Part shown: in pieces, positions 26,666 to 63,421 of the stretch | Position numbering within the stretch: the first letter of the stretch is position 1 | Layout: each line of letters begins with the position of its first letter | Assembly: GCA_002269645.1 (NCBI GenBank) | Contig: NIVC01000746.1 | Span: 248,001 to 312,000 of the forward strand | From: Macrostomum lignano | Lineage: Eukaryota | Direction: 5' to 3' | Length of the DNA: 64,000 bases | The notes under the pieces: generated by a model | Database searches by the model: none | The model's input: only the letters and a program-made list of their open reading frames with translations | What the model was told of the DNA's origin: nothing | Made by a program: the position numbers and the translations under genes

Positions 26666-27911
26666 ATGGAGCAGCACTGGCAGAAGACGGTCGTGCGGAT
26701 GCTGGGCCCGAATGTGCGGCAGCAGATTTGCAATCGTCTCTCCCAAGGTGACTCGGCTCAGCGGCTCTTCATATTCGGTAAATTTTCAGAATTAAGTGTG
26801 TTGCTATTTTTAATGAACAAAGGGGTGAAAAAGACAACCAAAATTTGCAAGCTCGAATTTGCGTCTGAGTAGTAGCTCGTAAATTCATAAGTTCTAAAAT
26901 TAATAACAATTGATTACACCTGCCCTAATTTGGGCGCATCTGAAGGCCAAGGACTAGGGGGGGGTCGCCACACACACCTCCAATTGCCCCAGCTAATGCT
27001 GGCACCCATTTTACAGCTGTGTGAACTGAAGCAAGGCAGAGTTGAATGTCTCGCACAAGGACACAAACTATTCCGAGTGGATTGAGAATCGAACCCCCGA
27101 CCTTCAGGTCGTGAGTCGGACGCTCTGACCACACTAGGCTGCAACCCCCTTATGAAAACCAGTCAACCATGGGGCAACTGAAAAATCAACAACCGAACAC
27201 TTTTGATCCCGCAGGCTGCATCGTTCTGATACTGACCGCCTCAACTCAGCCTCAAATGATGCTTCATCAGGACCGGATAAGCAGCTTCAGCTCGAGTCCA
27301 GCCTCTTTGGTCAACAGCTTGGCGGTTGCTGAGCAGCTCGCGTCCAACGGCCTGTTTTATGACGCAAGTGGCGGACTGATCTGCTTCCACTGCTCAGTGA
27401 GACTGCAGTCTGGGAGCTCCGACCCGCTGCAGCAGCACCTGCATCAGAGGCCGCGCTGCTACCTGCAGAAACTGCTGCGACTGGCTGCTGGAAGCGACGA
27501 TAAAATCCTGTTAGCTGATGTCGCTGCTGATCACGACAGGTGAGTGCCTTGATTAATTTGTGATTTATCAGCCACAACACCTCAAATGATTATCAGTGAT
27601 TATCAGCCCAATCATCAATGATTATCAGGTTCGACCGCGCCCTGAGGCGCCTGCACGCAGACCTGAAGTCCAGCACTTCAGTCCAGTTCGCGCAGACCTT
27701 CGGGCTCAGCCCGGAGCTGCTGCAGTTCGCCGCCACTCGCCACTTTATGCGGAACGGCGGCTCAATGCCGAATCGAGCCGGCGACCTTATCGAGCTGGCG
27801 CACGAATGCTCCGACCAGGTGCACCCCAGCCTGCTGCAGGTGCAAATTGTGCACATTCTTGCTGAAAGGTCACCTAACGAAGCTGTGGGTGTTGCGGCTT
27901 TTTTTAACTGA
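26666..27911 (+). CDS. IAP-like locus 1 (BIR + UBA-like); exons 26666-26747, 27215-27539, 27629-27839 (or read-through to stop 27911)
   Basis: DRISSF...QLASNGLFY...ICFHC-x14-H-x6-C BIR. FAQTFGLSPELLQ...AGDLIELA resembles the IAP UBA. Phases 1 and 2 match across the junctions. Confidence 0.75.
26900..27147 (-). mobile_element. SINE family A (CORE-like) copy in IAP locus 1 intron
   Basis: tRNA-like head with GGTTCGATTC, then ccttgtgcgagacattcaactctgccttgcttcagttcacacagctgtaaaatgggtgcc. Lacks part of the 3' segment seen in other copies. Confidence 0.85.
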
Positions 27912-28874
27912 CCAACTGCGAGTACAAATTTGCAATAAATTCTGTCAAGTATTTTGTTTCTCACAATCGACACACAAGCCATGCAGCCATGCTCTCAAAT
28001 ATATTGTGCTTTAAGAAATTCTCAACACTTAACTTATTTAATTTAATTTAATTTGTGCCAACAGCCAGGATGCAGGTTCCTGGAAAGTCCGTTATCGACT
28101 CCGATCGATTTCGATTCGACTGATTCCGATCGAGCAAGGCCCGTTACTTTTGCCTTTCTGAGCTTTCCCTTTTTTCTTTGCATTCTTCTTACCTGGAATG
28201 ACCCAAATTAAAAAGAATAGACAAAAATGAAACAAAAAACGCTGGAATCCGCAAAAGAACTCAGCGAAAACCCGATGATGGGCTGACCCTGAATCAACAA
28301 GCGGCAGGGAGAGGACAGAGAGGAGGCGGAGAGAGCGCAAGGGGGTCGAGGCAAGGGCATTGTGGTACGCAACTGTTTGTACGCTCGTATAACAGAATTT
28401 TTTCTTTCCTTCACCGCTGCACAGTACCAGTTGTACAAGTGAATGCACGAGCTCACTGTTCTCAGGATAAAAATAGAAATTTTTCTTCAAGGCCATGGTA
28501 AACCCGCGGAATTTATTCCAAGCCCCCTATAACTGCTCACTATAAGTTCTTCAACGGCCCAGGATTTCAATATAATCTACTATAATTGCTGCTGACTTGC
28601 CTGAGAGCATTGCCATGCAAGCTGAATTTGAATTCGACTTGTCCATAGTGCCACTGCTGGAGGTTTCTGATCCCATGTATGTCGTACGATCAGTAGGTCC
28701 AGTGCAAGAGGAACCGCAAACATTGACACGTACATCGGTTCTATCGACTTCTATCAACATGGCAAGCAAGCATTTATTTTTGCTCAGAAGAATGTTTAGG
28801 AAAACAACATTTTAGGTAGCTTGAAAACAGCTGTTGAAGTGTGTTGGCCCAGTAGTTGTGACCCCTTGCAGAAG

Positions 28875-29600
28875 TTGCAGTGCCCCCCTTGCAGTAGCCG
28901 TGGCGCCCTCTTCCAATAGCCGCGGCGCCCTCTTCCAGTAGCCGTGGCACCCTCTTCCAGTAGCCGTGGCGCCCTCTTCCAGTAGCCGTGGCGCCCTCTT
29001 TTAGTAGCTGTGGCGCCCTCTTTCAGTAGCCGTGGCGCCATCTTTCAGTAGATGTGGCGCCCTCTTCCAGTAGCCGCGGCGCCCTCTTCCAGTAGCCGTG
29101 GCACCCTCTTCCAGTAGCCGTGGCGCCCTCTTCCAGTAGCCGCGGCGCCCTCTTCCAGTAGCCGTGGCACCCTCTTCCAGTAGCCGTGGCGCCCTCTTCC
29201 AGTAGCCGCGGCGCCCTCTTCCAGTAGCCGTGGCACCCTCTTCCAGTAGCCGTGGCGCCCTCTTCCAGTAGCCGCGGCGCCCTCTTCCAGTAGCCGTGGC
29301 ACCCTCTTCCAGTAGCCGTGGCACCCTCTTCCAGTAGCCGTGGCGCCCTCTTCCAGTAGCCGTGGCACCCTCTTCCAGTAGCCGTGGCGCCCTCTTCCAG
29401 TAGCCGCGGCGCCCTCTTCCAGTAGCCGTGGCACCCTCTTCCAGTAGCCGTGGCGCCCTCTTCCAGTAGCCGCGGCGCCCTCTTCCAGTAGCCGTGGCAC
29501 CCTCTTCCAGTAGCTGTTGCGCCCTCTTCCAGTAGCCGTGGCGCCATCTTTCAGTAGATGTGGCGCCATCTTGCAGTAGTTGTTGCGCCCCCCTTGCAGT
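28875..29600. repeat. 22-bp minisatellite (cagtagccgtggcgccctcttc) with 66-bp higher-order trimer
   Basis: Variants gtggcgcc / gcggcgcc / gtggcacc cycle in order. Confidence 0.95.
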
Positions 29601-30068
29601 ACTCGTAGCTGTGGCGTATTTTAGTCATGGTCGCGTCATCTTAGTTGAATGTTTCTGGCACAAATTCTCATTCTTTAGATTCTACAGGACATCTACGAAA
29701 GTGTTCACAGATTTCTGGCATTCGTCATGCCTCTGAGCAGTCTGAGCCGGTCCAGGCTGTTCGAGAAGACCTCCAATACTCAAAGACCGATTCGCACAAG
29801 GGCTTTCGAGTCACGGAGCTCCTACTTTGGTAATGAAATTAGACATTTCCTTCCAAGCTTAGTAGCAAACCTAAGCACCTTTAAAGTTAGACAATCTAAA
29901 TATACTAAATCTCTAATTACTACTAAAAATGTAATTATATGCTTAGACTTGTCATTTAGTAGTGTGATACGCATATTAGCACATTTTTAAAGGTAAACCT
30001 GGATTAAATAAAATATTTGCTAAAACACTATAAAATATATTTCATTATTTTGTTATTACGTAAGAAAT

Positions 30069-30362
30069 GGAGGTTGTAGCCCAGTGATAGGAGCGTCGGA
30101 CTCACGACTGAAAGGTCGGGGGTTCGATGCTCGATACATCTCAAAGGAAAATCTATCCTTGAGCAAAACGCTTAACTCTGCAATTGCTTAGTTCACACAG
30201 CTGTAAAATAGGTGCCAGCATTAGCTGGGGTAATTGAGGGTGTGTGGCGACCCCCCAGTCCTTGGACTGAACAGCCGTACGCAGCCTTCAGATGCGCCGC
30301 GCAATAGCTGCGGCTGAGCTGTCGGTTGCACATCTGCCAATTACACTCTTAATTATTATTAA
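30069..30362 (+). mobile_element. SINE family A (CORE-like), near full-length
   Basis: Head ggttgtagcccagtg...ggttcgat; core ccttgagcaaaacgcttaactct...cagctgtaaaataggtgcc; ATT-rich tail. Confidence 0.88.
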
Positions 30363-30529
30363 TAGTATCATAACGTAAGAGAAATAGCGAATAAGTTCTG
30401 AGGCAAAACTCAAAATTCTGAATTTATTTTTTTCATTGATCCTTTAATCCTTTCATTTTTCCGCGAAATGCGAGCGTAGCGAGTCTGGCCGTTCTACTGC
30501 TGGTCACCTGCCGTAGCGACTGTCTGCAG

Positions 30530-31063
30530 GCTTTGAGCTTTGAAAACCGTTTGAGCTCATTCGACAGTTACCTGGCCAGCAGCAGCAGCTCAAGCAGAAG
30601 CATCAATCGGGAGCATCAGGAGCTGGCAGCTGCTGGATTCTGGCGCCAACCGGGATTTGTCGATGGCGCCAGCAACAACAACAGCAGCAGCAGCAACAAG
30701 GTGGTCTGCTTCTCCTGCGGCGTGTCCCCCCTGGGGAACAAGCGTCATCTGGAGAGCTGCCGTTTCAGCCAGCTGCTCGATGCCGTGCTGAACTGCTCCG
30801 TGCCAGCTGGCACCGTGAAAATCTGCCCGCTGTCAGCCGGCACCCGGACCGCCATCGGCCTGGCCGAGAGCTTTGGCTTTCCTCGCCGCTCCTGCCTGCT
30901 GGCCGCGTGCCGTCTGGCGGTGCCGGCGCCGAGATGCGGCGACATTGTCGCTGAGCTGCAGCGGTGGGAGGGGGCTGGCGACAGACTCGAGGAAGTTGCT
31001 AGGGATGTAGATGTGGAGACCTTGTGGTGTCTGGCCAGTGTGAATGGCCGCGGCTCATTGTGA
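30530..31063 (+). CDS. IAP-like locus 2 exon (compact BIR + UBA-like)
   Basis: Acceptor ctgcag|30530; FENRLSSF...ELAAAGFW...VVCFSC-x9-H-x3-C; LAESFGFPRR...CGDIVAEL. 5' and 3' connections uncertain. Confidence 0.7.
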   Translation, partial: ALSFENRLSSFDSYLASSSSSSRSINREHQELAAAGFWRQPGFVDGASNNNSSSSNKVVCFSCGVSPLGNKRHLESCRFSQLLDAVLNCSVPAGTVKICPLSAGTRTAIGLAESFGFPRRSCLLAACRLAVPAPRCGDIVAELQRWEGAGDRLEEVARDVDVETLWCLASVNGRGSL

Positions 31064-35983: not shown

Positions 35984-36251
<268 letters not shown>

Positions 36252-36706: not shown

Positions 36707-39700
36707 ATGGTCCGGTGCCAGATCAGGACTCTACTGCAACTAGCAACGGCCGCAAGCCTCACCTGTACGCTATTTTATTGGTTGTTTTGCTTGTCTAATA
36801 GAGCGGCAACTGAGCTCTTTCTGTCGTCTGTATCAGTTTACTGTAGCAACGAATCCACTTTGCACCTGCGGATGATCAGCAAAGATGTACAGCTGCCCAC
36901 AGTGTGCCAGGATCTCAACTGCAAGGCTGCCTACCTCAAGCACCTGCCGCTGGCCAGCAGTTCACATCGGGCAGATGGCCATCATCCCATTCCACCTATT
37001 CGACACCTGTTATGGAAAAATGAATCCGTGTCTGCCTATTTCGCTGAGCAACTGAAAACCTGGCATCGATTTCACCCGGACTGGACTGTGATGCTTTGGC
37101 GTGACCAGGATCTGCAGCCGTTTGTGAAGAAGCATTTTCCTGAAGCGCTGCCACGTTTCATGCAATTGGCGCCGTATACAATCATGCAGGTGGACATGGT
37201 CAGGTACATGCTGCTGTTCAAGGTATGAATGAACTCTTGATAAAAATTAGACTATATAGAAAAATTGCAAAATTTGAACATTTCTCAATGCCTTGACTTA
37301 CTTGACTTAGCTGCAGGGCGGTCCGAAGACGCAGCGGGGAGGCGAGCGTCGCCCATTCCGCTAATCCCTGAAAGACCCGCAAAGGCTAGGGCGCGGGGCC
37401 GGTCAGGGAGGTCTGCCGGTCCTGTCTGCAGCGTTGTCTTCGGTGGGGAAGACGGAGGCTCGTTTGGTGGCCCGGAGGAACCGGATGAGCCGTGGGATGT
37501 TCTCGGGCCGGCAAACGTCGTCCAGGGACGGGTTGGGCCCGAGGTGGTTGAGCCGGTCTCGGTTGAAGGCCGGGCAGTAGCAGACGAAGTGCTTGGCATC
37601 TTCATTCTCGAGGCTGCAGAAGGGGCAGAGTTCACTCCGGCGAACACATCGGAGGAAGCAGTGCCTGGCAAAGCAACCGTGACCTGTGATGCCTCAATAC
37701 CTTTAATAGAGTAGCAATACTTTCGGTTATGCCAACAGCGGTTAAAAGAACAGCAGTAGTTCGGCCACAGCTACATTTAACTGTTCTGCGACACGCTCCG
37801 CAATCCACCGGATTGTCCCAATTAAAATTCTTATAGTTTGAGTGAAAATCGAATTCGTTCAAAATGGATAGCAGAGTGGTGTATTTTAGAATTGAAGCTG
37901 AATAAAATTTGTTAAATCAATTAACAAACGCTGGGAAGAGTCAGTTTTAAGTAATTACTCAATATACTCAGCAGCAGTCAAAAGTTCCACCTTTCTCTTG
38001 CAGCAATTTCTCTTGGAATATTCTGAAATAAAGGATACGAGAAAACTGATCAGGGTAGCTTTAATCCATCCAACATGCGTCACTCGCAAGATTGAGAGAC
38101 TTTACCTGGAATCTTCTGTGATGGCGACTTTTTGATGTTGCTGAGAATATCAGCATCCTCTTGGCATCAAAGCCTCCCTTTAAGACTTGGGGGGGGCTGA
38201 GACCGGAGAAAAGTTGACTATTCGTGTCCGCTTTTTTGGGTCGAGGTATGACTTTATGCAGAGTATTAGTTTTCCACCGAGGAAAAGAAGAGGTGCAACC
38301 TTCATTATTTGGCTAGTCATAAAATTAAGGCACGCGCCAAATTTACCGGGTTAAAAACTGGCTCTACTACTTGCAGTACGGAGGCGTGTACGCGGACCTG
38401 GACTACAGTCTGACTGCCAGTCTGGACGACCACCGTCGCTTCTACGCTGTGGTGACCCGCGAGCCCGAAGCCCACTCGCTGCAGTATTTCAAATTCCAAT
38501 GGCCCCCGAGAACATTGGCCAATCCGGCCTTCCTTATGGCCGCTCCCGGGCACAGCTTCTATCGGCACTGCATCAACTGTCTGCAGATGATGCCATTCAC
38601 CAGGGGCAAGCCGCTCAGCTTTGCCGGTCCATTCGGCCTGACTGCAATACTGGAGCGGTACAGTGCGGCATGTCCTGTGGCCAGCAGTCCACTGGAGACT
38701 GTGTACATTCCGCCATCGTACAGCTTCTATCCCTATGAGGGCAACAAGTTAAACTCGTCAGGCAGCGTCTACATGCCCATGCGACTGGTTTCGCTGAAGA
38801 ATTCTTGCAAACAAGTCAGTGGAACTTGGCCTGAGCAGCTGCAAAAGTGAGAAAGGAACTTATGGCTGTTTTTGGTATTCACTGACTTTCTAGACTTGCA
38901 GTGACTTGTGAGCAGTAATTTATTCGCTTGAGTAGGTTTTAGAATTGGTGCTCTGAGTAGGTTTTAGAATTGGTGCTCTGAGTAGGTTTTAGAATTGGTG
39001 CTCTGAGTAGGTTTTAGAATTGGTGCTCTGAGTAGGTTTTAGAATTGGTGCTCTGAGCAGGTTTTAGAATTGGTGCTCTGAGCAGGTTTTAGAATTGGTG
39101 CTCTGAGCAGGTTTTAGAATTGGTGCTCTGAGCAGGTTTTAGAATTGGTGCTCTGAGTAGGTTTTAGAATTGGTGCTCTGAGTAGGTTTTAGAATTGGTG
39201 CTCTGAGTAGGTTTTAGAATTGGTGCTCTGAGTAGGTTTTAGAATTGGTGCTCTGAGCAGGTTTTAGAATTGGTGCTCTGAGTAGGTTTTAGAATTGGTG
39301 CTCTGAGTAGGTCGCAACCTGTTGCTCCGATCTCAATAAATATCAAGATTTATATGCAGTCATACAAAGCGCATGAACTGTTACCATCGTTCATGCATTA
39401 GTAACCAAACCTTTTAGCATCTTCAGTTAGCCAACTTAATAAAAAAATAACATAATTTATTACACTTGGCCTAATAAGCAGACGTGCAACCGACAGCTCA
39501 GCCGCAGCTATTGCGCGGTGCATCTGAAGGCTGCATACGGCTGTTCGGTCCAAGAACTGCAGGGGGGTCGCCACACACACCCTCAATTACCCCAGCTAAT
39601 GCTGGCACCCATTTTACAGCTGGGTGAGCTGAAGCACTGCAGAATTTAGTGTCTTGCTCAAGGACACAAACTGTTCCGAGTGGGTCGAGAATCGAACCCC

Positions 39701-40010
39701 CGACCTTTCATTCGTGAGCCCGGCGCTCTAACCACTAGGCCACAACCCTCACTAACTTCTGTATGCTAGTTTGACAAAGACTCGTCATCGAATTTGTACC
39801 TGTTTTTCAATTCATCACCCAAGGTACTGCACCGACCCGAACAACCTGGACCCAGTCACTGACAAGACGCAACCCATGATCGCCGTGCACGACAATAAAA
39901 AGATTGGCGCAGTCTACGATGGTGTGGGAACAAGCCACTACTTCCAGAATCTGACGCATCTCAGAAAGCTGTTTGGTTCAAAACTACAGATGGGAGTCGA
40001 GTGGATTTGA
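36707..40010 (+). CDS. GT32 / Gly_transf_sug DXD glycosyltransferase, type II membrane; exons 36707-37222, 38377-38846, 39824-40010
   Basis: N-terminal TM; IPPIRHLLWK, WHRFHPDWTVMLWRDQDL, DMVRYMLLFKYGGVYADLD, PGHSFYRHCI, FAGPFGLT. Splice phases 0 and 2 match. Confidence 0.9.
37290..37870 (-). mobile_element. Frameshifted 3' remnant of a non-LTR retrotransposon in GT32 intron 1
   Basis: Minus frame GITGHGCFARH...CPFC..ENEDAKHFVCYCPAF.RDRLNHLG...RLIRFLRATKR (C-terminal CCHC domain), stop 37405-37403; tail with taagtcaag repeats. Confidence 0.8.
38929..39312. repeat. 25-bp minisatellite (gagtaggttttagaattggtgctct), ~15 copies, GT32 intron 2
   Basis: Direct inspection. Confidence 0.97.
39450..39748 (-). 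mobile_element. SINE family A (CORE-like) copy in GT32 intron 2
   Basis: Reverse complement matches 30069-30362 along its length. Confidence 0.88.
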
Positions 40011-41177
40011 TCACTTCAACAAGATTTGAACTACTCACTCATTTCGAAGCCAAATGCATATGTGTTACAGTTTTGCATGCGAGCAAACCTCAATGTTATT
40101 ATAAACCAACATAAACAATGCCAGTGTGAGCGTTAGTGCGAAAAGTGTGGGAGCCTGACAAAGTCAAACTGTCAAAGAACTTTTGATACATTAACATTTG
40201 ATTTTTTAAAAGTACACACTTGACTGTGGAGCCGGGTCGCCCTGCCCTGCAGCCACTTGGCACTGTGCGCCCGCTTCGACGGACTTCAACGGACCTCAGT
40301 GCGGCGGTGCCATCATTCACGCACTGCAGGCATTCACTTCCTAAATGAGTGATCCTCGTCTTAAGTTTTATTATGCGCTGCTCAAGTAAAACAGCAATTG
40401 AGCTGGATATTGTGTCGATTCTTTAATACCAGGTCTCCCAAATTCTACAAAATAAAAATGTCTATAATATATTCCTTTTAAGCTTTTTTCAGAAAGAATT
40501 GTTATTTTTAGAATTCAGAAATCAGCTTCCGAAAAAAAAACCGCAGAGCGTAATGAACAGTGCCGTTTTTTGTATATAGCTCGTATATTTATAGATTAAT
40601 TTCTCTTGGCGTATTTTTCTTATATTTCTAATGTCAGTAAAGTATTAAGTAGAAGTTCTGTATATTTTAGACTAAGATATTTTTTAGTGTAGGTTGCATT
40701 TTAATTTATCGAGCTGTTAGTTTTATGTACGGTATTTCGTTGGCTGAAAAGCAAGGTATGTATAATTATACCTCTTCTGGCAGCGCCAAATTTATAGTCC
40801 AATGTAAAAACATTTATTTTGCCGGGCCTCGCGCATTGCTCAACTCTTGCCAGAAACAAACAGGCTTCTTACCCTTACGGATTCTAATGTGTTTTATTGG
40901 TACGTTCTGGTGCACAAATTGATTGATTGATTGTGAATTCGTCATTAGACACATGTAAACAATAGTTTGATTGAAGCCAGACCAGTCAGCTATAGGATTC
41001 AGATTTATGTGCTGGGAGGTCCGACAGTATCCGCTGATTTCCTAGAAACTCAGCGAGCGTGTTCGCATCGAACAAAAAAAGTTCGTAACGGATATTTCAG
41101 TTTTCAGAAATAAATTAGAATTTTAGCCAGAATTAGTTTTTTTGCATTACTATTTTATTTTTTTGCAGGCGGCCAAA

Positions 41178-44100
41178 ATGTCCAACTACAACCACAACGG
41201 AGCATCGACGGCCAACGAAGAAAACAATATTTTGGTAAATACTGTGCTGCCAAAGATAATTCCCCAATCGGAACAAAGAGAAAAGACAAATCCAAGTGAG
41301 CAAAAGGTGCAATTGGCACCGGATGCGAATCCGAGGCTGCGAGTTTATTTTCTGGGTAGCTTATTGATTATTTTAGCTGCATCCGTCAGCCTCGCCAATC
41401 TTAGCTATGAAAACCGCCTGCGCTCATTCTCTGGAAACGGCCTTGTTGATGTTGAAACTGCGGAGCGTTGGGCGAGGCATGGGTTTACCAGCGACGGTCT
41501 TGGAGGCGCCAGCTGCTGCCACTGCGGAGCTCACGCGGACAAACTGACTGCTTGCGAGCCCGCTGAGTGCCACGCGAACCAGCAGCCAGAGTGCAGTCTG
41601 CATCAACTGATCCGACTTCTCAATGTTGAACTATCCGTGATGGCGGCTGAAATCGCTTCCCGAGTTGAAAAGCTTTTGACTAAACTTCGAAAACTCTTTG
41701 AGCTGCTTTTGAACGGACAACTGGTTGGCCAGGTTGAATCGTACGGCTTCCCGGAGGACGGCGTGACACTGGCAATAAATAACTACGTCTTCTGTCCAGC
41801 AGATAGAAGCTCAGACCTGAGACCTGGGGACTTAATTCAGATCTTGCACTCTCTGCCGCCTGAGCTGGTGTCATTCTTGGGGGAAGCATTGGCTGGTAGA
41901 GGCTCATTCAGAGACCTGCTGCAACGGGATCTTTCGAGCTGTCTGGGAACCACCGATCGATTACCAGAGCAAGTGGTCGCTGCTCGTATTAACAACGGAA
42001 ACCATGTGTCGAATATCGATTTTGGAGCCACGATGCCGTAAGATTCTGTATTTGTTTGCTCGATCGAATTTGTGCTTTAACTCTGCTTTTTGCTTGTGCT
42101 TTGTTCTTTGCTGCAATATACCACACCCACTCAATTCGGTCCTGCGAGCAGTGGATTTCGTCTGAAAGGTAAAAGCCCACACGGATTCATAGAGGCACCT
42201 AGGGTTCTATGACCAGATCTGTCGTTTCGTTCCAATCATGTTCCCACCCGATTTACCGGGCAGCAATGGGAGTGATCGTTCGGTCACTATCTATGGAAAA
42301 GACATACTGAACAATTACATTGTAGTATAGCATTTTGCAAGCTGATAGAGACTACGAGCAAGCAATTTAATCCAAGATAGCAAAAACACATGTATTTCGA
42401 GCCTCACTGCTAGTTGTCTATGGTAAAAAGTGTGTCAAACTGGCAGGCAATTTAATCCTTGGACTCAGGCTTGGAGCACTCATTTAAGCACTGAAATCCA
42501 TAAACAGCGCTGTCTATGCCGTTCTACTCTCAGTTTTTCAACATGTCAGACGAAAGTGACCAAGCCAGCACCATTTTTGAAGACATCGACGGAATCGCTG
42601 CCGAAGATGCCGGAGCGCAACCTGTGCAATATGCTAAGATTAGCGACGAAAAGCATAGATTGATAATCGACGCTATCGACAGAGGCGATAACAACAGAAG
42701 CATTGTGCGCTGGCTAAATGTAAAGGCTAAGACCGTTGCGAGCATTCGAAGACGGTACAAAACTACTGGCCGCAGTGAACGGCTGCGACGTGGTGGTGAC
42801 CAAAAATCCTCTCTTGACTTTAAAACAGATGCAGTTTTAAAGAAATTACTGGATCATTTTCCTGAAGTGCAAGTGAGTGAAGTTCTGTTGTGTGTTTCTT
42901 TATATGCAGGTTTCGTTAAGTGAACTTTTTTGCTCAACCTTGTTCTACGTCGTAACTTTTTCATATGGAGCTTCTTTTTAAGACTTTTCTTTTAAGACAC
43001 ACTTTTTACCATAGACAGCTAGCTTGGATTAAATTGCTTGCTCGTTGTCTCTACTAGCTTGCAAAATGCTATACTAGCATTGAATGGAGAATACTACTTT
43101 TAACTGGAGTGAAATACGAGTACTAAAATACGAGTAAAGTATAGATTAGGATTTTCGACCATAGACAAAGATTTCGATTTATGCAGTCGCTTTTCGACCA
43201 TAGTTTCGACCATAATTTTCGACCATAGGTTGATCTGGATGCTGTTGAAATATCGTCTCTTCCCCAAAGAGTACGCGTGAGCAGATGTATAACTAGCATG
43301 GGGAAGCGTTTGTGAATTTCCGAAGAATCGGTCCGCTGACAACGCTCGCGATATGCCTTCACCCATGCTGAACAAGTATCCGCTGACAACGAAAACGCGG
43401 AGGATGGCATCGTGAAATGATGGGCTACAGCTTCACCGCTGTATCACTGGCCTACCGATTCTCTGAGCTTGATAACTTTCGAAACTGACTATACCACGAT
43501 GGTTTCTATTCTGTTGTCTTGTTCCGCATTGCGTTGCCTTGTCTTGTTGGACCCTGGGATGCATGATGACTGATCTACATAGATTTTAAAAAGCTTGCAT
43601 GCAATTGACTGCTCGCAGGATCAAATTGATTAGAACGACAACCTTGGCCTTAGAACCTCAAAGACTCTCAGACTGTGTGTTTTTCAACATTCAGAACTAA
43701 ACTGACTGCTCGCGGGACGCCAACTTAAGCTACGGAATGGAGCCCGAAGTAAAGCTTCAATCTGATCAACGAATAAAAACTGAAACGATATTCATCCTGC
43801 ATACTCTTTTTTGTTCAGGTAGAAGAAATTCTGTATACACAAGCATGCATATCGGATTTTCGCCTCGTACCCTGATTAGATTTGAAGACATCTCCATCAC
43901 CATGAAGAATCACCATGCAGACCGTCAATAAATTCAACAGTTCAGTCGAAAGTGCAAGTCACCAACTGCGTGCCAACACACTGGAATTATTTTTTACAAT
44001 TTTGCCATCTGAGTTAAAGATTAACATTAACATTGTTTGGGGGGGGGGGAACAATAACAACCAGTGGTCTGGCGCGGCGCTCTGATGTGCCAGCGGCCCA

Positions 44101-46781
44101 GGATCGATTCCAAGTGCAGTCACATTAATAATTTGGGGCTAAATTGGAATCCAAACCCCAAGGCACAGTGAAGTGTACATGCCTAACGATAAATAAAGGC
44201 AGGGCCGCTGTACACTCCTGGGTGAGTGTGTACCTGTGCGTATGACTGCGTACGTATCCGCGCGCTTGTGTGCCTGCTCAGGGGAGTCGGAGGAAGGGGC
44301 AGTAATGCCTCTCGCCGGTTGTGCGACAATGTCGCTTAAAGTGCGCCAGGGTGCACACAGCCCCTAAAAAACTAATATCGAATTCATTTATGCCATCGTT
44401 TTTAGTTGCTAAACTGAAACAAAACACGGTAAAAGTCAAAACTCGCCATTGATCCAGCGTACTCGTGCCAATAGGATGCATTCTGATTAAGCAACATCGC
44501 TGATGCTAAGGAGGCCGGCAGGCCGCCTATAGGATTTTTGTTAACTCGGTGGCTTCAAAGTTCGACAGATGCTGCTTTTGCTGCTCTGCTGCGGTTCAAC
44601 TGTTAAAGTCGCCCCGTAACTACGAGTTACGTGTGTTATTGCTCTATACTTTTGAGTTTGCATTTAACCAACATGTACAGATTTTTGTCCATTATATGAG
44701 TCCGCTATCAGATTTAAACCGAGCTTTCCAAATATTAGATATTAGATGACTGGGCCAATCTTCAGAGCGCCTTTGCACCAGGGGCTTTAGCACCAGGGGC
44801 TTTAGCACCAGGGGCTTTAGCACCAGGGGCTTTAGCACCAGGGGCTTTAGCACCAGGGGCTTTAGCACCAGGGGCTTTAGCACCAGGGGCTTTAGCACCA
44901 GGGGCTTTAGCACCAGGGGCTTTAGCACCAGGGGCTTTAGCACCAGGGGCGCCAGCACCAGGGGCGCCAGCACCAGGGGCGCCAGCACCAGGGGCGCCAG
45001 CACCAGGGGCGCCAGCACCAGGGGCGCCAGCACCAGGGCGCCAGCACCAGGGGCTTTAGCACCAGGGGCTTTAGCACCAGGGGCTTTAGCACCAGGGGCT
45101 TTAGCACCAGGGGCTTTAGCACCAGGGGCTTTAGCACCAGGGGCTTTAGCACCAGGGGCGCCAGCACCAGGGGCGCCAGCACCAGGGGCTTTAGCACCAG
45201 GGGCGCCAGCACCAGGGGCGCCAGCACCAGGGGCGCCAGCACCAGGGGCGCCAGCACCAGGGGCGCCAGCACCAGGGGCGCCAGCACCAGGGGCGCCAGC
45301 ACCAGGGGCGCCAGCACCAGGGGCTTTAGCACCAGGGGCTTTAGCACCAGGGGCGCCAGCACCAGGGGCGCCAGCACCAGGGGCGCCAGCACCAGGGGCG
45401 CCAGCACCAGGGGCGCCAGCACCAGGGGCGCCAGCACCAGGGGCGCCAGCACCAGGGGCTTTAGCACCAGGGGCGCCAGCACCAGGGGCGCCAGCACCAG
45501 GGGCGCCAGCACCAGAAGCGCCAGCACCAGGGGCGCCAGCACCAGGGGCGCCAGCACCAGGGGCGCCAGCACCAGGGGCGCCAGCACCAGGGGCGCCAGC
45601 ACCAGGGGCGCCAGCACCAGGGGCGCCAGCACCAGGGGCTTTAGCACCAGGGGCTTTAGCACCAGGGGCTTTAGCACCAGGGGCTTTAGCACCAGGGGCT
45701 TTAGCACCAGGGGCGCCAGCACCAGGGGCGCCAGCACCAGGGCGCCAGCACCAGGGGCGCCAGCACCAGGGGCGCCAGCACCAGGGGCGCCAGCACCAGG
45801 GGCGCCAGCACCAGGGGCTTTAGCACCAGGGGCGCCAGCACCAGGGGCTTTAGCACCAGGGGCTTTAGCACCAGGGGCTTTAGCACCAGGGGCGCCAGCA
45901 CCAGGGGCGCCAGCACCAGGGGCGCCAGCACCAGGGGCGCCAGCACCAGGGGCGCCAGCACCAGGGGCGCCAGCACCAGGGGCGCCAGCACCAGGGGCTT
46001 TAGCACCAGGGGCGCCAGCACCAGGGGCGCCAGCACCAGGGGCGCCAGCACCAGGGGCGCCAGCACCAGAAGCGCCAGCACCAGGGGCGCCAGCACCAGG
46101 GGCGCCAGCACCAGGGGCGCCAGCACCAGGGGCGCCAGCACCAGGGGCGTCAGCACCAGGGGCGCCAGCACCAGGGGCGCCAGCACCAGGGGCGCCAGCA
46201 CCAGGGGCGCCAGCACCAGGGGCGCCAGCACCAGGGGCGCCAGCACCAGGGGCGCCAGCACCAGGGGCGCCAGCACCAGGGGCGCCAGCACCAGGGGCGC
46301 CAGCACCAGGGGCGCCAGCACCAGGGGCGCCAGCACCAGGGGCGCCAGCACCAGGGGCGCCAGCACCAGGGGCGCCAGCACCAGGGGCGCCAGCACCAGG
46401 GACGCCAGCACCAGGGACGCCAGCACCAGGGGCGCCAGCCAGTAGCTAGTGCACGGGTGTTTAAAAATTCCTATTTGAGGAAATTTAATAATATATTAGT
46501 CTAAGCTGTCTGCTTCGATGTGATGTGATTGCTGCACGCAACCCTCTCAAACATTCCCCTTGAACAAACCCGATTGCAGTGAGCAAGATGTGACGCACGC
46601 CAATTCACTGCTTCAAGACGACGACAGCCCGCAGTGCGTTCGGTGCCGCAGTCGCCAACGCAATCGGATCGTGCTACCGTGCGCTCACCTGAAGTTCTGT
46701 CAGGTGTGCGTCAGCGATATGAAGAACTGTCAACTTTGTGGCCGCTATATACTGTGCAATGTACCTGCCTATATAGTGTGA
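41178..46781 (+). CDS. IAP-like locus 3 (BIR-UBA-like-RING); exons 41178-42037 (possible 81-nt intron 41296-41376) and 46580-46781
   Basis: YENRLRSF...CCHC-x15-H-x6-C; VESYGFPE...PGDLIQIL. RING CVRC...VLPCAHLKFCQVC...CQLC...AYIV*. Phase-2 donor at 42037 matches the phase-2 acceptor at 46580. Confidence 0.82.
42413..43019 (+). mobile_element. Non-autonomous Tc1/IS630-like element retaining the HTH DNA-binding region
   Basis: Inverted repeats tgtctatggtaaaaagtgtgtc (42415-42436) / gacacactttttaccatagaca (42996-43017) with TA at the flanks. Internal ORF ISDEKHRLIIDA...IVRWLNVKAKTVASIRRRYKTTG...RRGG; no DDE domain. Confidence 0.7.
44062..44365 (+). mobile_element. SINE family B copy in IAP locus 3 intron
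   Basis: Similar to 865-1182; B-box-like ggatcgattcc. Confidence 0.72.
44776..46438. repeat. 15-bp minisatellite with two unit types (agcaccaggggcttt / agcaccaggggcgcc), ~110 copies
   Basis: Direct inspection; lies in the IAP locus 3 intron. Confidence 0.98.
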
Positions 46782-48630: not shown

Positions 48631-50351
48631 GGGATAGCGACGTTTGCCTGCGGGACGTTTGCCAGCCGACGTTTGCCTGCGGGACGTTTGCCAGCCGACA
48701 TTTGCCAGCCGACGTTTGCCAGCCGACGTTTGCCTGCGGGACGTTTGCCAGCCGACGTTTGCCTGCGGGACGTTTGCCAGCCGACATTTGCCAGCCGACG
48801 TTTGCCAGCCGACGTTTGCCAGTGGGACGTTTGCCAGCCGAAGTTTGCCTGCCGGACGTTTGCCAGCCGACGTTTGCCTGCGGGACGTTTGCCAGCCGAC
48901 ATTTGCCAGCCGACGTTTGCCAGCCGACTTTTGCCAGCGGGACGTTTGCCAGCCGAAGTTTGCCTGCCGGACGTTTGCCTGCCGGACGTTTGCCAGCCGA
49001 CGTTTGCCAGCCGACGTTTGCCAGCCGACGTTTGCCAGCCGACGTTTGCCTGCCGGAAGTTTGCCAGCCAAAATTTGCTAGCCAATATAAAGCCAGTCAG
49101 TGAAAAATTTGATACTGAAACATTCGCAGTTTAGCGGTTTGACAAAAACCGTTTTTACTCCAACTTTTTGACGGTTATTCGCATGTATACAAGTTTGAAA
49201 GCAAAATATATAAATTATGCAGTTCATCAGTCTAACGTCTAATATCTAGTTTAACAACGATTTTGGCACAACATATCAAAAGATGAACATTGGGTTTGCC
49301 TCGTATGAAAGCAATAACAATTGTTGTGCTGAAAAGATGAAAACTTCCTATCTCCCTATGGCCTTCAAAACATTTTTCATAGATTTCGAGTGCTGCGTAC
49401 TTCTACTTTAGTAGTCCTTGGCATGACTAAGCTTTGCATACGTAGTGTCTAGCGCTTGCTATCCTACTAGCTTGCCACTGGCGGCTTGTCTGGCTATTCA
49501 GCTATATAGCTTACTATAAAAACGTACCGCATTCGACTCATCTACACATGTACGTTGAGATCGCGGTTTCCTGGCTTACTTGAGTAGGCCTAGTAATACA
49601 ACAGCATTGGAATCAATTTGCTTACTTTTGGATCTCCCAATGAACTGAGAAATATATGAGCCAGAATTACCGCTCAGCAGCTCTTTTTGTTTGCCTCATA
49701 ACTTAATCGCTGGAGATTCCCGTTGTAATCTTCGCGTCTTCTTTCGCACATCAAAAATCAAACATCTCAAACTGGGAAAAACGATACACAATTGACAATT
49801 GTCAAAAGTAAACAATGTTTTCACATTCAAAGAAAATCGTTGTTAAACTGGATATTAGATGTAAATCTATATAAATTGCATAATTTATAGATTTTGCATA
49901 AATTTCATAATTTATATATTTTGCTTTCAAACTTGTATATATGCGAATAACCGTCAAAAAGTTGGAGTAAAAACGGTTTTTGTCAAACCGCTAAACTGCG
50001 AATGTTTCAGTATCAAATTTTTCACTGACTGGCTTTATATTGGCTAGCAAATTTTGGCTGGCAAACTTCCGGCAGGCAAACGTCGGCTGGCAAACGTCGG
50101 CTGGCAAACGTCCGGCAGGCAAACGTCGGCTGGCAAATGTCGGCTGGCAAACGTCCGACTGGCAAACGTCCCGCTGGCAAACGTCGGCTGGCAAATGTCG
50201 GCTGGCAAATGTCGGCTGGCAAACGTCGGCTGGCAAACGTCCCGCAGGCAAACGTCCGGCAGGCAAACGTCGGCTGGCAAATGTCGGCTGGCAAACGTCC
50301 CGCAGGCAAACGTCGGCTGGCAAACGTCCCGCAGGCAAACGTCGTAGACCC
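48631..50351. mobile_element. Mutator-like foldback element (non-autonomous)
   Basis: Begins GGG, ends CCC, flanked by direct repeat agcccgccg (48622-48630, 50352-50360). Inverted arms of ~520-650 bp contain gtttgccagccgac subrepeats plus unique sequence; no ORF in the spacer. Confidence 0.85.
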
Positions 50352-51891
50352 AGCCCGCCGCCAGGCGGTGTCAATAAAGAGCGCAGAAGGGTTAGCATAA
50401 TACACGCGGAGAGCTTTCATTGGCTGGCGGGAGAACTTGAAATTATCGATCGTGCTAGATTTTACAGACGAACGTAAGGTTTACCAAATACACAGTGAAT
50501 TAGCAATTGATACAGATTAGTTGCACGCTACTACAAGTAAACGTTAAAATAAACTATTGGAGAATTTTAAATGAGAAATTGCAAAGGAAACTACAGTTTA
50601 ACGGCCCTTTTGCGGGACCACTTTAAACTAGCAACGTCACAATACTATATATATTTGAAATACGTTTTACCTTTTGGATAGTTTGTGTCTGTGATAAAAA
50701 CGTATTTAAGTAAAGCTTTTCGAGGACTAAGTTAATAATCCGAGCTAGACCTGGCCTCCAACTTTTGCAGTTCCAACTCCAACTTATGCTTTCATCATAG
50801 GTAGGCTGAATTGCCGAAGCTGATATTGACGCCGCACAGGCACTGCTTACACGTTTCACTAGGGCCTGTCCAATTGATGATGACGCCTCCCGTACGGTAT
50901 TGTCGCGTTTCCAGGATAGCAGTTTCGTTGCCATAGACAACGGACAATTCGTTGTCACGTGCTGCGACCGCTGATTCTTTGCATTGTTATGCTGCTTGAG
51001 GATCCTAAAAACAATGATTAATTGTCACAATTTGCGACTCGCAACTACACATTATAGTTTTTGTAGAGCTTCTGTAAAGCTGCACTTTGGGAAGCTTATA
51101 GTCTGTACATGCCTTGGCTAGAATCAGGGAAGCCTCTATGCTCTATTCCATGTTAGCTGCGGTAGCGCAGCGAACCAATAAGATTCCCTGGCTAGAATAT
51201 TCACTATTGCTCATAGTGGCCCTTTATTGATAGCATATTTTTAGTTCCTTGTTCTATGCTAAAAGCTGCACAAGTACGAGCCTTAGTAACTACCCAGCAA
51301 CACTGAAAACCGGCACCCGGTTAGAGCATTGGCAGAGCGATTGACTTCAGCTCACTACACTGCGACTTGCGCAAAGTTTTCTTTTCCAACTCTTGTTCAC
51401 GCGCACTGAGCTTAGGGTGGCAGTTTTCGATTTGTCTGATTATATACAAGTCTAAATAGAAGTTCTCTGTTTGCAAAAGAAAACCGTCTCTAGAGAGTAA
51501 AGAAGTACGGTTTGAATTGCAGCAAGTCTCATGGAGCGCAGCCACTGCATGGACATGTAGAGTTTTTCTCTGTTGCAAATGGCCTATAAGGTAGGTCGTG
51601 AATCTATTTAACATTTTTGAAAATCACAGAATATACACGAAACGATCAATAATGGTTTCTAACTAAAAAAAGACTTAAAATTCGCACAGCCTACTTTCTT
51701 GCTGTGGATTTTCCTAGTAGTAGAAATTAAATTCATGAAAATTGAAACTGCTATAGTAATTTTTGGGCAACAATACAACCCAAATAAGTTACACTTTTCT
51801 TAAAGCTTCGTACGATTCATTTCGTGTTTTTTTTGACATGCACCCTCACAGGTTCCTTCAGAGTTCAAGCAGGAAACTGAAGAACCGATTA

Positions 51892-53673
51892 ATGGCCCGC
51901 GCCAGTCAATCTAGCAACCAAACCAATATTCAGACCCTGACCATCTCGCTACTCTCAGCCAAACAGGCTAAAAAGTCTATTCAAGGGGCAGAAAATAGAG
52001 TTTGGAATTTGGTTCTGGCCGGTTATCTACTAGTTATAATCGGCACTTCAAACAGACCGGATCAGATTATCTTTAATCGCCGTCTTGAGTCATTCAAAGG
52101 CATTATAGAAGCAACTGCAGCAGAAAAGGTGGCCGAGCAGGGGTTTCATTTTGATGGCAGTTGCAGCGCCAGTTGCTGTCACTGCGGCTTCCGAGTTGAG
52201 AAACTGACGGACCGTCTGGAGCAGTGGAAACCGCTTCACCAGCCCAACTGTGAGCTGCTTCAATTGCTGCAGCTCATTGACAAGAAGCCGCCCAACGCTG
52301 AAATTGCTGCTGATGCTAAAAAACACGAAAAACTGATCGACCAGCTTCTATCAGCTCTTCTTGACCCCATCGTTGGACACGTGAAGTCGTACGGCTTTTC
52401 CGAAGGAGACGTCGTCCTGTCCTTGTTGAAACTCATGGTTTTGAAGCAGGCGGCAGGCAGTGACTTGAAATTGACACAGCCGGGAGACCTCATCAAAGTA
52501 ATTCAGGGCATACCGGATGCTCTGCGCACACTGGGTGCCTGGACCGCAGATTTGGTAAAGGCGGCTGCCAGCTGGTGCGTGACCACACCTGCGCAAAACG
52601 AGCGCATCAACTGCTTGAGGTAATTTCTAACATAATACGTTTTCGACTTTTAGTGTTAAAACCTTTTTCAAGGTCTAGGTATCTTTAACACTATGCGACA
52701 AATTAGATTAGCCTCATCGATTCAAATGTTTCAACTGTGCTGGGCGATATTTAGATCCAGATATAGACAGTCGTAGTGCTGTATACCAAGATCCCTACTA
52801 GCCTACGGGGTGAGCGTCCGGACACATGGGCTCTTCGAACCCCTAGGCAACCGAAACAATGAACAGAGCAGCACGCACTCATGTAATTAGCAACAGAAGG
52901 CTTAATTACGAGAGCAGCATGGCACAAGTGCGCCGGAACGCTTTGGTAGGTCTAGCGGGTCTTCTTTCATTATTGAGACTTCGCAGCAAGAGACCCGTTT
53001 TTCCGGCTAAGTGAGAAAAGCCAATCAAATTGCACGACAAAACCCAATACGACAGGGGGGAGGGTTGGGCAACCCAGACCCACCACCCCACCACCGACCC
53101 CATCCCGCACCAGCCAACCACACCTCCTCCTGGGAAAGAAAACATCGAGTCCGCCGCCGAGCCCAGCCAATCAGAACGCAGTGAAGAGCAAATAGTACAA
53201 GAGACACAGAAGCGCCAAGCCAATTGACGGCACGAAAATTGTGATAAGTTAATAACAAGGAGAACTGGGAGAGGAGGGAATTAACCTCGGCAAAGGCTTA
53301 AGCCGAATGACAAATCACATGGAAGGTGCATGGACAAACGCACACAACTAACTGAGTCATCCAAAGACTGAAGGACGGGGTGCACTTACATTGAAACAAA
53401 AGTACAGAACACAACAATACGATCAATGGCCTCGATTTTTTCTTACTCAGAAATTCAGATGACAGGCCAGAGGAGCCGGCCAGAAGCTCCGGCCCGGCTG
53501 CAACGGATTGCGACGACAGCCCGATGTGCAAGAACTGCAGTCAGCGAAGCCTCGACTGCGTTTTGTTGCCTTGCGCGCACCTGAAATACTGCCGGCAATG
53601 CGCGAGAAGCTTCTGCACCTGCCCAGCCTGCGGCAAAGCCATTCTCACTACCATAGGAGCTTTTCTCGGTTGA
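51892..53673 (+). CDS. IAP-like locus 4 (BIR-UBA-like-RING), paralog of locus 3; exons 51892-52619, 53451-53673
   Basis: FNRRLESF...CCHC-x17-H-x3-C; VKSYGFSE...PGDLIKVI. RING exon absent from the ORF track: DDSPMCKNC...VLLPCAHLKYCRQC...CPAC...AFLG*. Phase 2 matches at both junctions; start uncertain. Confidence 0.82.

Positions 53674-58777: not shown

Positions 58778-63421
<4,644 letters not shown>

Follow-up and report, generated by a model that had tools for sequence, protein, structure and literature searches.

BIR domains of IAP proteins differ in what they bind. In type II BIRs, such as XIAP BIR3, the IBM groove is built by the segment between C-x2-C and the zinc-binding His; type I BIRs (BIR1 of XIAP, cIAP1/2 and NAIP) bind TAB1 or TRAF2, not IBM peptides. 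A departure from the zinc-ligand arrangement has been described in oysters, where the 'Type Y' BIR has lost three residues between the zinc His and the last Cys, giving H-x3-C; its helix is predicted to be shorter, and zinc binding is regarded as retained (Witkop et al. 2022, PMC8917759). A survey of 312 species, with no Macrostomum included, reported a near-complete absence of RING-IAPs in Platyhelminthes and the loss of XIAP/DIAP2-like genes (PMC13159474).

We analysed a window of 64,000 nucleotides from Macrostomum lignano (contig NIVC01000746.1, positions 248,001 to 312,000). Four plus-strand loci with BIR-like domains span positions 26666-53673 of this window, from the locus 1 start ATG to the stop codon that ends the RING exon of locus 4. 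The four zinc-ligand spacings reported by a first-pass annotation were recovered exactly by a regular-expression scan of the six-frame translation, and the loci comprise the following features:

26666..26777, + strand: locus 1 coding exon 1 (MEQHWQ...LFIF), read from the sequence; phase-1 donor GTAAAT
27215..27539, + strand: locus 1 exon 2, with the conserved hydrophobic helix and the BIR; donor AG/GTGAGT (slash marks the exon boundary)
27382-27459, + strand: locus 1 zinc motif, C-x2-C-x14-H-x6-C (scan)
27540-27628, + strand: locus 1 intron, 89 nt, in frame
27629..27911, + strand: locus 1 exon 3, with the linker helix and UBA-like segment TFGL...AGDLIELAH, no RING
27909-27911, + strand: locus 1 stop, at the end of exon 3
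28594..28761, + strand: locus 2 upstream exon, 5'-partial in the annotation; GC donor
29679..29829, + strand: locus 2 middle exon, from the splice match to BOX15_Mlig028882g1
30480..31063, + strand: locus 2 last exon, with the hydrophobic helix, BIR, linker, UBA-like SFGF...CGDIVAEL and stop, no RING
30707-30760, + strand: locus 2 zinc motif, C-x2-C-x9-H-x3-C (scan)
41178..42037, + strand: locus 3 exon 1, with an N-terminal region, the hydrophobic helix, BIR, linker, UBA-like segment and a tail; phase-2 donor CC/GTAAGA
41514-41594, + strand: locus 3 zinc motif, C-x2-C-x15-H-x6-C (scan)
46580..46781, + strand: locus 3 exon 2, with an IAP-type RING, C-terminal tail ...AYIV and stop
46635-46739, + strand: locus 3 RING (C3HC4), from the motif scan and Pfam zf-C3HC4_3
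51838..52619, + strand: locus 4 exon 1, from Met 'MHPHRF', with the hydrophobic helix, BIR, linker and UBA-like segment; phase-2 donor AG/GTAATT
52174-52251, + strand: locus 4 zinc motif, C-x2-C-x17-H-x3-C (scan)
53451..53673, + strand: locus 4 exon 2, with an IAP-type RING, tail ...GAFLG and stop; acceptor CAG/A completes the codon
53527-53631, + strand: locus 4 RING, from the motif scan

Reading frames and splice sites are intact in all four loci, and the introns are clean GT/GC-AG with matching phases. For the duplicate locus L001 an RNA-seq-based product of 252 aa is annotated, which the three-exon model of locus 1 reproduces, and splicing 28594-28761, 29679-29829 and 30480-31063 yields exactly the GenBank protein BOX15_Mlig028882g1 (P0163) for locus 2. 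Both GenBank models, that of locus 2 and that of the copy of locus 1, come from an RNA-seq-guided assembly; on this annotation, transcription is supported directly for locus 2 and via the duplicate for locus 1. GenBank holds no protein entry for locus 3 or locus 4, and locus 4 is represented in UniProt only by models from an older assembly. The intron of locus 3 contains a transposon fragment and a 1.7-kb minisatellite.

The Pfam BIR model scored 27.2 bits against locus 1, above its gathering cut-off of 22.9, 19.4 bits against locus 2 and 15.8 bits against locus 4, both under the cut-off, and gave no match in locus 3. A profile built from the four loci matched solved BIRs in the PDB with E values of 3e-7 to 4e-16; by protein, the values were 3.3e-7 for cIAP1 BIR1, about 1e-6 for cIAP2 BIR1, 2e-5 for XIAP and 4e-16 for NAIP. 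In a representative library the same profile matched 1,511 proteins, essentially all of them BIR proteins. Under custom HMMs for BIR1, BIR2 and BIR3, every BIR of the family scored 15-42 bits; for most members the BIR1 score equalled or exceeded that of BIR2, and BIR2 exceeded BIR3, the differences being small (0-9 bits). The paralogy of loci 3 and 4 suggested earlier was confirmed (30% identity, E 2e-28); locus 1 is linked to locus 3 by a match of E 1e-12, and the kinship of locus 2 to the others is seen only via the profile. Columns invariant in a 12-sequence family alignment are the R of RLxSF, the G of aGF, the three zinc Cys, the G of SYGF and the G of PGDLI, and the three Cys are present in at least 90% of the rows of an 18-sequence alignment.

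Structure prediction pointed the same way. The AlphaFold model of locus 4 (overall pLDDT 72.7, pTM 0.66) reaches a pLDDT of about 85-92 over residues 11-200, and the best 50 Foldseek matches listed were all BIR domains (probability 0.99-1.00, TM 0.45-0.67), with XIAP BIR3 entries as the best. The top structural matches of a shallow locus 3 model were likewise BIRs only. Absence of a BIR fold, an outcome envisaged in the first-pass annotation, is thus not what was found for locus 4, whose protein is predicted to retain the three-dimensional fold. Profiles and models together show that the four loci encode genuine BIR domains.

The helical linker proposed to follow each BIR appears as helices in the AlphaFold predictions. 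For the UBA-like segment proposed next to it, the outcome was divided. Aligned by hhalign with 28 IAP UBAs, the family segment gave E 3.9e-4 over 51 columns, with a probability of only 35%, S[YF]GF pairing with the MGF of IAP UBAs; HMMER alignments of the family profile run past the last BIR into Pfam PF21290 (UBA_BIRC2-3) of canonical IAPs, and the AlphaFold order in this region is helix, YGF, helix, loop, helix. However, the Pfam search of the family returned no UBA match and the PDB profile search for a UBA only spurious ones.

An IAP-type RING exon is found in two of the four loci, 3 and 4, joined via a conserved phase-2 intron and with all eight RING ligands present in both. The RING of locus 3 is recognised by Pfam zf-C3HC4_3 at 1.2e-8, and its PDB matches are headed by CGRRF1 (7e-6), followed by cIAP1 (3e-5) and by cIAP/XIAP RINGs (3e-5 to 4e-3). 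For the RING of locus 4, the best PDB matches are the cIAP2, cIAP1 and XIAP RINGs (1e-8 to 5e-8), aligned through the C-terminal tail; AlphaFold models this part of locus 4 poorly (pLDDT 34-55). For loci 1 and 2 the window yielded no RING exon, and the RNA-seq-based models of locus 2 and of the copy of locus 1 stop without one. The same RING-less architecture is common to the more distant paralogues P0156 and P0162, and is therefore old and stable. The description of the whole cluster as ubiquitin ligases thus suits loci 3 and 4, but not loci 1 and 2.

We consider it likely that these are four functional genes and that, in M. lignano, they belong to a highly divergent, lineage-specific IAP branch. 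In each protein a conserved hydrophobic helix on the N-terminal side would precede a single BIR, to which a helical linker and then a divergent UBA of the IAP type are joined; the BIR would keep its fold and three zinc Cys, with a variable loop before the His, which lies either 6 or 3 residues ahead of the last Cys. The locus 3 and 4 proteins would most likely be active as dimeric RING E3 ubiquitin ligases, in which the BIR may serve as a type-I-like protein-interaction module lacking an IBM groove and choosing partners, the UBA would bind ubiquitin chains and the RING would recruit E2~Ub. Loci 1 and 2 would be stable RING-less paralogues, probably adaptors or competitors for the same partners.

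The hydrophobic stretch immediately precedes the BIR and occupies an equivalent position in all family members; it could instead be a transmembrane anchor, making these proteins E3 ligases or adaptors whose BIR-UBA-RING module is tethered to an organelle. Kyte-Doolittle maxima over 19 residues of 1.6-2.0 in locus 3, P0157, P0160 and P0162 would suit such an anchor, but loci 1, 2 and 4, like P0005, P0154 and P0156, reach no more than 1.2-1.56, runs without charge are often shorter than 18 residues, and Asn, Thr and Pro replace helix residues in the locus 3 duplicate. In the AlphaFold model (pTM 0.66) the helix has a pLDDT of about 90, consistent with its packing on the BIR and linker. A membrane anchor is in our view improbable; its presence in some members would change the mechanism proposed above.

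Loci 1-4 keep four ligands and lack the spacing C-x2-C-x16-H-x6-C, as do all 12 members whose motif was read (the four loci and eight paralogues), the relatives having x17/6, x18/7, x13/6, x11/3, x6/3 and x15/6; the His is always close to the three zinc Cys. Among 466 BIR stretches from 142 non-family profile matches, a sample biased towards this profile, x16-H-x6 accounted for 79%, x13-x18 with H-x6 for about 14% and H-x3 for about 1.7%. Spacings close to x16 that retain H-x6 do have precedents among BIRs. H-x3-C was found in loci 2 and 4, in P0160 and in gene B of L003, where zinc would be bound via the shifted His.

The motifs of loci 1-3 are without the conserved groove Trp, that of locus 4 contains a single Trp displaced from the usual place, and the acidic positions of the IBM groove are missing, judged solely by reading the sequences; this agrees with the earlier statement that most loci lack the groove Trp/Asp/Glu. 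The stretch that builds the groove in type II BIRs has anywhere from 6 to more than 40 residues in family members, which makes canonical binding of IBM peptides or caspases seem unlikely, and IBM binding was probably lost. We weighed the possibility that these are canonical anti-apoptotic IAPs, whose BIR binds IBM-bearing caspases or antagonists despite the altered spacing. The BIR-UBA-RING layout, as in XIAP and cIAP-type proteins, and the XIAP BIR3 entries heading the structural matches of the locus 4 model would favour it, but the variable segment has no conserved Trp or acidic positions and the sequence profiles lean to BIR1-position (type I) domains, and we hold it to be quite improbable.

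Comparison with duplicated copies yielded dN/dS values of 0.148 for locus 1 against its L001 copy (p 1e-5, 217 codons), 0.392 for locus 2 against its L001 copy (p 0.011) and 0.257 for locus 3 against its L003 copy (p 2.7e-5). Frames and splice sites are preserved in the copies of loci 1-3, and the three indels of locus 2 are all in frame (multiples of three). The locus 4 protein and that of a second M. lignano copy share 95% identity, with the zinc motif unchanged, and the non-canonical spacing is identical between each locus and its duplicate. The nucleotide identity of locus 2 to its duplicate (86%) is below that of the flanking DNA (94-96%), which, with its omega of 0.39, indicates relaxed constraint. 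Loci 1-3 are under measurable selective constraint, neither decaying nor demonstrably fast-evolving: dN/dS of 0.15-0.39 does not fit the neutral decay contemplated in the first-pass annotation, and its term 'rapidly diverging' is contradicted by the purifying selection evident between copies (omega 0.15, 0.39 and 0.26) and by the unchanged zinc spacings.

It is very improbable, and for loci 1-3 largely refuted, that the loci are pseudogenes, that is, decaying IAP duplicates with lesions for zinc spacings and truncation for the missing RING of loci 1 and 2: low or absent Pfam BIR scores, the lack of a RING in these two loci, the lower conservation of locus 2 than its flanks (omega 0.39) and the transposon fragment and 1.7-kb minisatellite in the locus 3 intron would accord with decay, but no reading frame or splice site of the four loci is disrupted, dN/dS at loci 1-3 lies significantly below 1, the three locus 2 indels are all multiples of three, each odd spacing recurs identically in its duplicate, the RING-less form is shared with P0156 and P0162, hence old and stable, and RNA-seq-based gene models exist.

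Another copy of the cluster region carries three further family members; the gene content of the cluster therefore varies, and the local tandem expansion of single-BIR IAP relatives that had been claimed is borne out. All full-length relatives are M. lignano 'hypothetical proteins'; the four intact genes represent, so far, a Macrostomum-only branch of the IAP family. The main significance of these genes is that RING-IAPs are reported as lost in flatworms, yet IAP-type RINGs occur in M. lignano loci 3 and 4. A speculative extension, which we rate as rather unlikely, is that the BIR acts as a variable recognition scaffold, with the zinc core, fold, UBA and RING fixed, the groove loop free in length and the His moving by one helical turn. 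A tandem set of E3 ligases and of decoys without a RING, variable in copy number and with a separate ligand for each member, would then form an innate-immune or cell-death sensor repertoire derived from the IAP architecture, within a phylum believed to have lost its RING-IAPs.

Compared with XIAP/cIAP1/cIAP2/DIAP2-type IAPs, the family shares the BIR fold and three zinc cysteines, a putative BIRC2/3-type UBA between BIR and RING, and a C3HC4 RING at the extreme C-terminus with a hydrophobic/aromatic tail (..AFLG and ..AYIV versus ..TFLS). By contrast, it has one BIR instead of three, a C-x2-C to His loop that departs from the usual 16 residues (9-17 in the window, 6 to more than 40 family-wide), and, in loci 2 and 4, a His 3 residues before the last Cys; it lacks recognisable IBM groove residues and a CARD, has an extra conserved hydrophobic helix before the BIR, and mostly escapes the Pfam BIR and UBA models.

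There is a likeness to type I BIRs at the domain level: the best single-domain matches are cIAP1 BIR1 (3m1d), cIAP2 BIR1 (3m0a, 7nk0) and XIAP BIR1 (2poi, 6qci), the BIR1-position HMMs score top for most members, and an IBM groove signature is absent. Type I BIRs, however, retain the canonical x16-H-x6 spacing. The H-x3-C spacing of the members named above also occurs in the oyster 'Type Y' BIR. 'Type Y' is rare (2-3 genes per species), scattered and housed inside otherwise canonical multi-domain IAPs (PMC8917759), whereas the entire M. lignano family is non-canonical and varies in upstream loop length too. Finally, as in the IAP expansions of bivalves and other invertebrates, tandem and segmental amplification is accompanied by gain or loss of the RING and by novel BIR variants; unlike those of bivalves, the M. 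lignano expansion took place in Platyhelminthes, and all its members seen are single-BIR proteins.

A regular-expression scan of the six-frame translation of the window found four C-x2-C...H...C motifs, all four on the + strand. Their spacings agree exactly with those of the first-pass annotation, which had described rapidly diverging IAP-like loci with non-canonical BIR spacing. The cluster limits it gave, 26666 and 53673, coincide with the first ATG of locus 1 and the last stop of locus 4.

Coding exons and zinc motifs of the four loci
Locus 1: 26666-26777, 27215-27539 and 27629-27911, + strand; three coding exons with phase-1 and phase-2 GT-AG introns; zinc motif 27382-27459, + strand, x14-H-x6
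Locus 2: 28594-28761 (GC donor), 29679-29829 and 30480-31063, + strand; spliced as in BOX15_Mlig028882g1; zinc motif 30707-30760, + strand, x9-H-x3
Locus 3: 41178-42037 and 46580-46781, + strand; BIR exon, then RING exon; zinc motif 41514-41594, + strand, x15-H-x6
Locus 4: 51838-52619 and 53451-53673, + strand; BIR exon, then RING exon; zinc motif 52174-52251, + strand, x17-H-x3

Applied to a duplicated copy of the locus, the three-exon model of locus 1 yields the 252-residue product annotated there from transcripts. The spliced exons of locus 2 match its GenBank protein residue for residue, and this protein can be reproduced solely with a GC-AG first intron (ATG/GCAAGC ... TTTAG/ATT, donor at 28761/28762). 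In loci 3 and 4 the frame of the BIR exon meets a stop only within the donor (GTAAGA and GTAATT, respectively); a phase-2 intron follows, and the single base completing the codon opens the RING exon. The GenBank models here derive from an RNA-seq-guided assembly, so both locus 2 and the locus 1 copy are transcribed. Transcription is thus shown through annotation only, directly for locus 2 and via the duplicate for locus 1.

Pfam alone was equivocal on the identity of the domains. Locus 1 passed the BIR cut-off (27.2 bits against 22.9), loci 2 and 4 fell below it (19.4 and 15.8 bits, respectively), and locus 3 had no Pfam BIR match. A profile of the four loci was compared with solved BIRs and matched BIR1 of cIAP1 (3.3e-7), BIR1 of cIAP2 (~1e-6), BIR1 and BIR3 of XIAP (~2e-5) and NAIP (4e-16, three BIRs summed). 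A word-indexed homologue search with locus 3 returned no match; what exposed the family was an exhaustive profile search of 1.84 billion representatives, which recovered 1,511 proteins at E <= 1e-3. Among the best 150 of these, M. lignano relatives aside, nearly all were multi-BIR proteins aligned to the BIR part of the profile only. An AlphaFold model of locus 4, computed from an 18-sequence family alignment, reached a pLDDT of 72.7 and a pTM of 0.66 (~85-92 over residues 11-200), and all 50 of the PDB matches listed by Foldseek were BIR domains (probability 0.99-1.00, TM 0.45-0.67). The top structural matches of a shallow locus 3 model were likewise all BIRs. The four-locus profile removes the doubt left by Pfam, and we conclude that the predicted products of all four loci contain BIR domains. 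Zinc coordination at the H-x3-C sites is predicted. HMMs for BIR1, BIR2 and BIR3 scored most family BIRs in the order BIR1 >= BIR2 > BIR3, with margins too small to choose between a BIR3-UBA-RING origin and BIR1 plus a deletion.

Non-canonical spacing recurs among the M. lignano paralogues, which together with the four loci make up the family. Full-profile matches (BIR, linker and UBA) all came from M. lignano, as 'hypothetical proteins' or under spurious automatic names, and form at least 8 clusters at 50% identity. The positions invariant among 12 aligned family sequences were the Arg of RLxSF, the Gly of aGF, the three zinc Cys, the Gly of SYGF and the Gly of PGDLI; the zinc His was found in every member at a shifting position. 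The relatives showed x17-H-x6, x18-H-x7, x13-H-x6, x11-H-x3, x15-H-x6 and x6-H-x3, and one had more than 40 residues in the loop before the His. None of the 12 members whose motif was read (four loci and eight paralogues) had the canonical spacing. For comparison, 79% of 466 BIR stretches in 142 hits from outside the family, a sample biased towards the family profile, were x16-H-x6, ~14% were x13-x18 with H-x6 and ~1.7% had H-x3. Small changes in loop length are therefore not unprecedented; an entire family lacking the canonical form, with recurrent H-x3-C, is unusual. The second-best match to the family profile, P0002 (an unnamed protein of 750 aa from an ENA contig, outside the window), has six tandem BIRs, all ~x18-H-x6-C, so repeated non-canonical BIRs occur in other organisms too.

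A conserved hydrophobic helix lies ~10 residues upstream of each BIR, which is followed by a long helix and then by a segment in which S[YF]GF leads into a helix and a loop, and [PA]GDLI into another helix. The evidence leans against the upstream helix being a conserved membrane anchor: its Kyte-Doolittle maxima are 1.2 to 2.0, the duplicate of locus 3 carries Asn, Thr and Pro within it, and AlphaFold places it confidently inside the compact locus 4 model. Searched alone, the UBA-like segment had no meaningful match among Pfam or PDB profiles (the best PDB match, the Stac SH3 at E 0.12 through 'RPGDLI', was rejected), and single-sequence hhalign was weak (E 0.036-0.1). Family-profile HMMER alignments ran unbroken from the last BIR into Pfam UBA_BIRC2-3 of canonical IAPs from animals including Ptychodera. 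Profile-profile comparison with 28 IAP UBAs aligned 51 columns at E 3.9e-4, placing SYGF on the MGF loop, and the segment lies between BIR and RING, as the UBA does in IAPs. With moderate confidence, we regard it as a probable divergent IAP-type UBA.

Only two complete C3HC4 RINGs were found by regular expression in the window (46635-46739 and 53527-53631), and a tblastn search of the window with the RING exons gave no further convincing copy. The RING of locus 4 aligned best with those of cIAP2, cIAP1 and XIAP (1e-8 to 5e-8), through the C-terminal tail, and that of locus 3 matched CGRRF1, cIAP1/2 and XIAP; by homology both are classed as IAP type. The first-pass reading as single-BIR ubiquitin ligases would apply to loci 3 and 4, each with a complete C3HC4 RING, and not to loci 1 and 2, for which no RING was found. 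Two candidate remnants were discarded. 'LPCSHLALC' at 40230-40268 (tblastn E 0.089) contains a stop, lacks the first Cys pair and is attributed to chance; it lies in a block 92% identical in nucleotides to the duplicated contig L003, within the 84-96% of the surrounding DNA. The apparent RING tail at the end of locus 1 ('AAFFN' against 'RAFIA', MAFFT) is judged an alignment coincidence; the locus-1-like family proteins P0156 and P0162 have different ends.

Constraint could be assessed from duplicated copies. DV1 is a line of M. lignano with duplicated chromosomes and a redundant assembly (PMC5730564), in which two further contigs run colinear with parts of the window: L001, 86-98% identical in nucleotides to 22-39 kb, and L003 (NIVC01003394.1), which matches 34.6-46.3 kb. 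Nei-Gojobori estimates for loci 1-3 against these copies were as follows.

Constraint between duplicated copies
Locus 1 versus L001: dN/dS 0.148; synonymous/nonsynonymous 16/8; p versus neutrality 1e-5
Locus 2 versus L001: dN/dS 0.392; synonymous/nonsynonymous 16.5/20.5; p versus neutrality 0.011
Locus 3 exon 1 versus L003: dN/dS 0.257; synonymous/nonsynonymous 23/20; p versus neutrality 2.7e-5

All three indels between locus 2 and its copy are in frame. Frames, splice sites and every non-canonical zinc spacing are identical between window and copy, and the locus 4 protein is 95% identical to a second copy (P0001, UniProt) with the same motif. Neutral decay, one outcome that the first-pass annotation named as refuting its reading, fails on these observations. 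Its 'rapidly diverging' does not stand either: the paralogues of the window are old (21-34% amino acid identity) and not demonstrably fast, and dN/dS was not calculated between them because synonymous sites are saturated at that identity. Each zinc-site state is stably inherited under purifying selection. The loci belong to a genuine IAP subfamily, lineage-specific and under constraint, whose predicted zinc site is plastic.

Gene content differs between the duplicated copies as assembled. Between blocks matching window 40244-40393 and 40825-42248, L003 carries an extra 8.4-kb segment (L003 7742-16196) where the window has 430 bp only (40393-40825). Three additional family genes lie in it, along with a reverse-transcriptase fragment.

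Family genes in the extra segment of L003
Gene A, P0005: single exon, x17-H-x6
Gene B, unannotated: RING intron, x6-H-x3
Gene C, unannotated: single exon, x15-H-x6

Conversely, a Tc1/mariner-like fragment inside the locus 3 intron (42248-43425, ORF 42516-42923) is missing from syntenic L003 and is therefore a window-specific insertion; its matches to HTH_29, HTH_28 and a Sleeping Beauty-type HTH are all below Pfam cut-offs.

Minisatellites are abundant in the window, a stretch of eukaryotic DNA, and create long spurious ORFs on both strands. Large ones sit within introns, at 44775-46439, 28884-29590, 13031-14878, 18674-21357 and 59750-62536. Among them are 111 copies of a 15-bp unit (62% GC) in the locus 3 intron, a 22-bp array in the locus 2 intron and a 39-bp array in the Abl-interactor (Abi) gene; arrays elsewhere measure 151 x 18 bp and 113 x 25 bp. 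Between loci 3 and 4 is a foldback-like structure with inverted arms at 48638-49227 and 49898-50344, 670 nt apart. Its arms consist of 14/29-bp subrepeats (GGCTGGCAAACGTC), and over the inner 215 nt they are 98% complementary. A repeat of ~200 bp with a tRNA-like head (GGTTCGATTC box) occurs at 26947-27149 (- strand), 30072-30284 and 39480-39748, one copy sitting in locus 1 intron 1; it looks like a SINE, and ARAGORN called no tRNA genes in the window. The neighbouring genes are listed below.

Genes near the cluster
1804-2436: TIR_2 gene (Pfam 7.9e-12), with ORFs 389-820, 1382-1831 and 2437-2922, ~25 kb upstream of the cluster; its reading frame region is broken by a 24-bp repeat, and the neighbouring exons had no Pfam match
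12654-15996: Abi gene (Abi_HHR and SH3) with long poly-Gln tracts, upstream of the cluster
25348-25680: mitochondrial-type ribosomal protein S9 exon, upstream of the cluster
36707-38850: glycosyltransferase gene (Gly_transf_sug, DXD motif) of which two exons were seen, lying between loci 2 and 3 and on their strand; kept in all three assembled copies (window, L001 and L003), with Nei-Gojobori dN/dS of 0.15-0.37 versus L001

Judged by what the homologous domains are known to do, loci 3 and 4 would act as RING-dimer E3 ligases, in which the BIR would pick a partner, the UBA bind ubiquitin chains and the RING activate E2~Ub. Loci 1 and 2 may serve as adaptors or competitors, as may the more distant RING-less paralogues P0156 and P0162. 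In type II BIRs the groove that binds the IBM peptide motif is formed by the stretch between C-x2-C and the His. This stretch is the variable part of the family and is without the conserved Trp and acidic residues, and by sequence the family BIR is closest to BIR1-type (type I) domains. Binding of IBMs or caspases in the canonical way is therefore predicted to be unlikely. These roles are inferred; what the analysis shows is homology, predicted fold, gene structure and constraint.

The family amounts to a natural experiment in BIR zinc-site tolerance, with the Cys fixed, the loop before the His freely variable and the His 6, 7 or 3 residues before the last Cys. Because M. lignano lends itself to transgenesis and RNAi as a model of regeneration, any role that the predicted non-IBM BIR ligases and their RING-less partners play in immunity, regeneration or the survival of stem cells can be tested there directly. 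No papers naming these gene identifiers or Macrostomum IAPs were found. A 2026 survey of 312 species reported the loss of RING-IAPs and XIAP/DIAP2-like genes in Platyhelminthes, from a flatworm sample in which Macrostomum was not included (PMC13159474). Pfam-style screens, that survey's among them, would miss most family BIRs. Because the M. lignano cluster and its paralogues carry BIR-UBA-RING genes, in an early-branching free-living flatworm, the loss would be limited at most to the lineages sampled, and the claim is thereby qualified. The closest known systems are the XIAP/cIAP-type BIR-UBA-RING ligases, the type I BIRs, the oyster 'Type Y' BIR and the invertebrate IAP expansions. Type Y, which has lost three residues on the way from the zinc His to the last Cys, is the published precedent for H-x3-C (PMC8917759).
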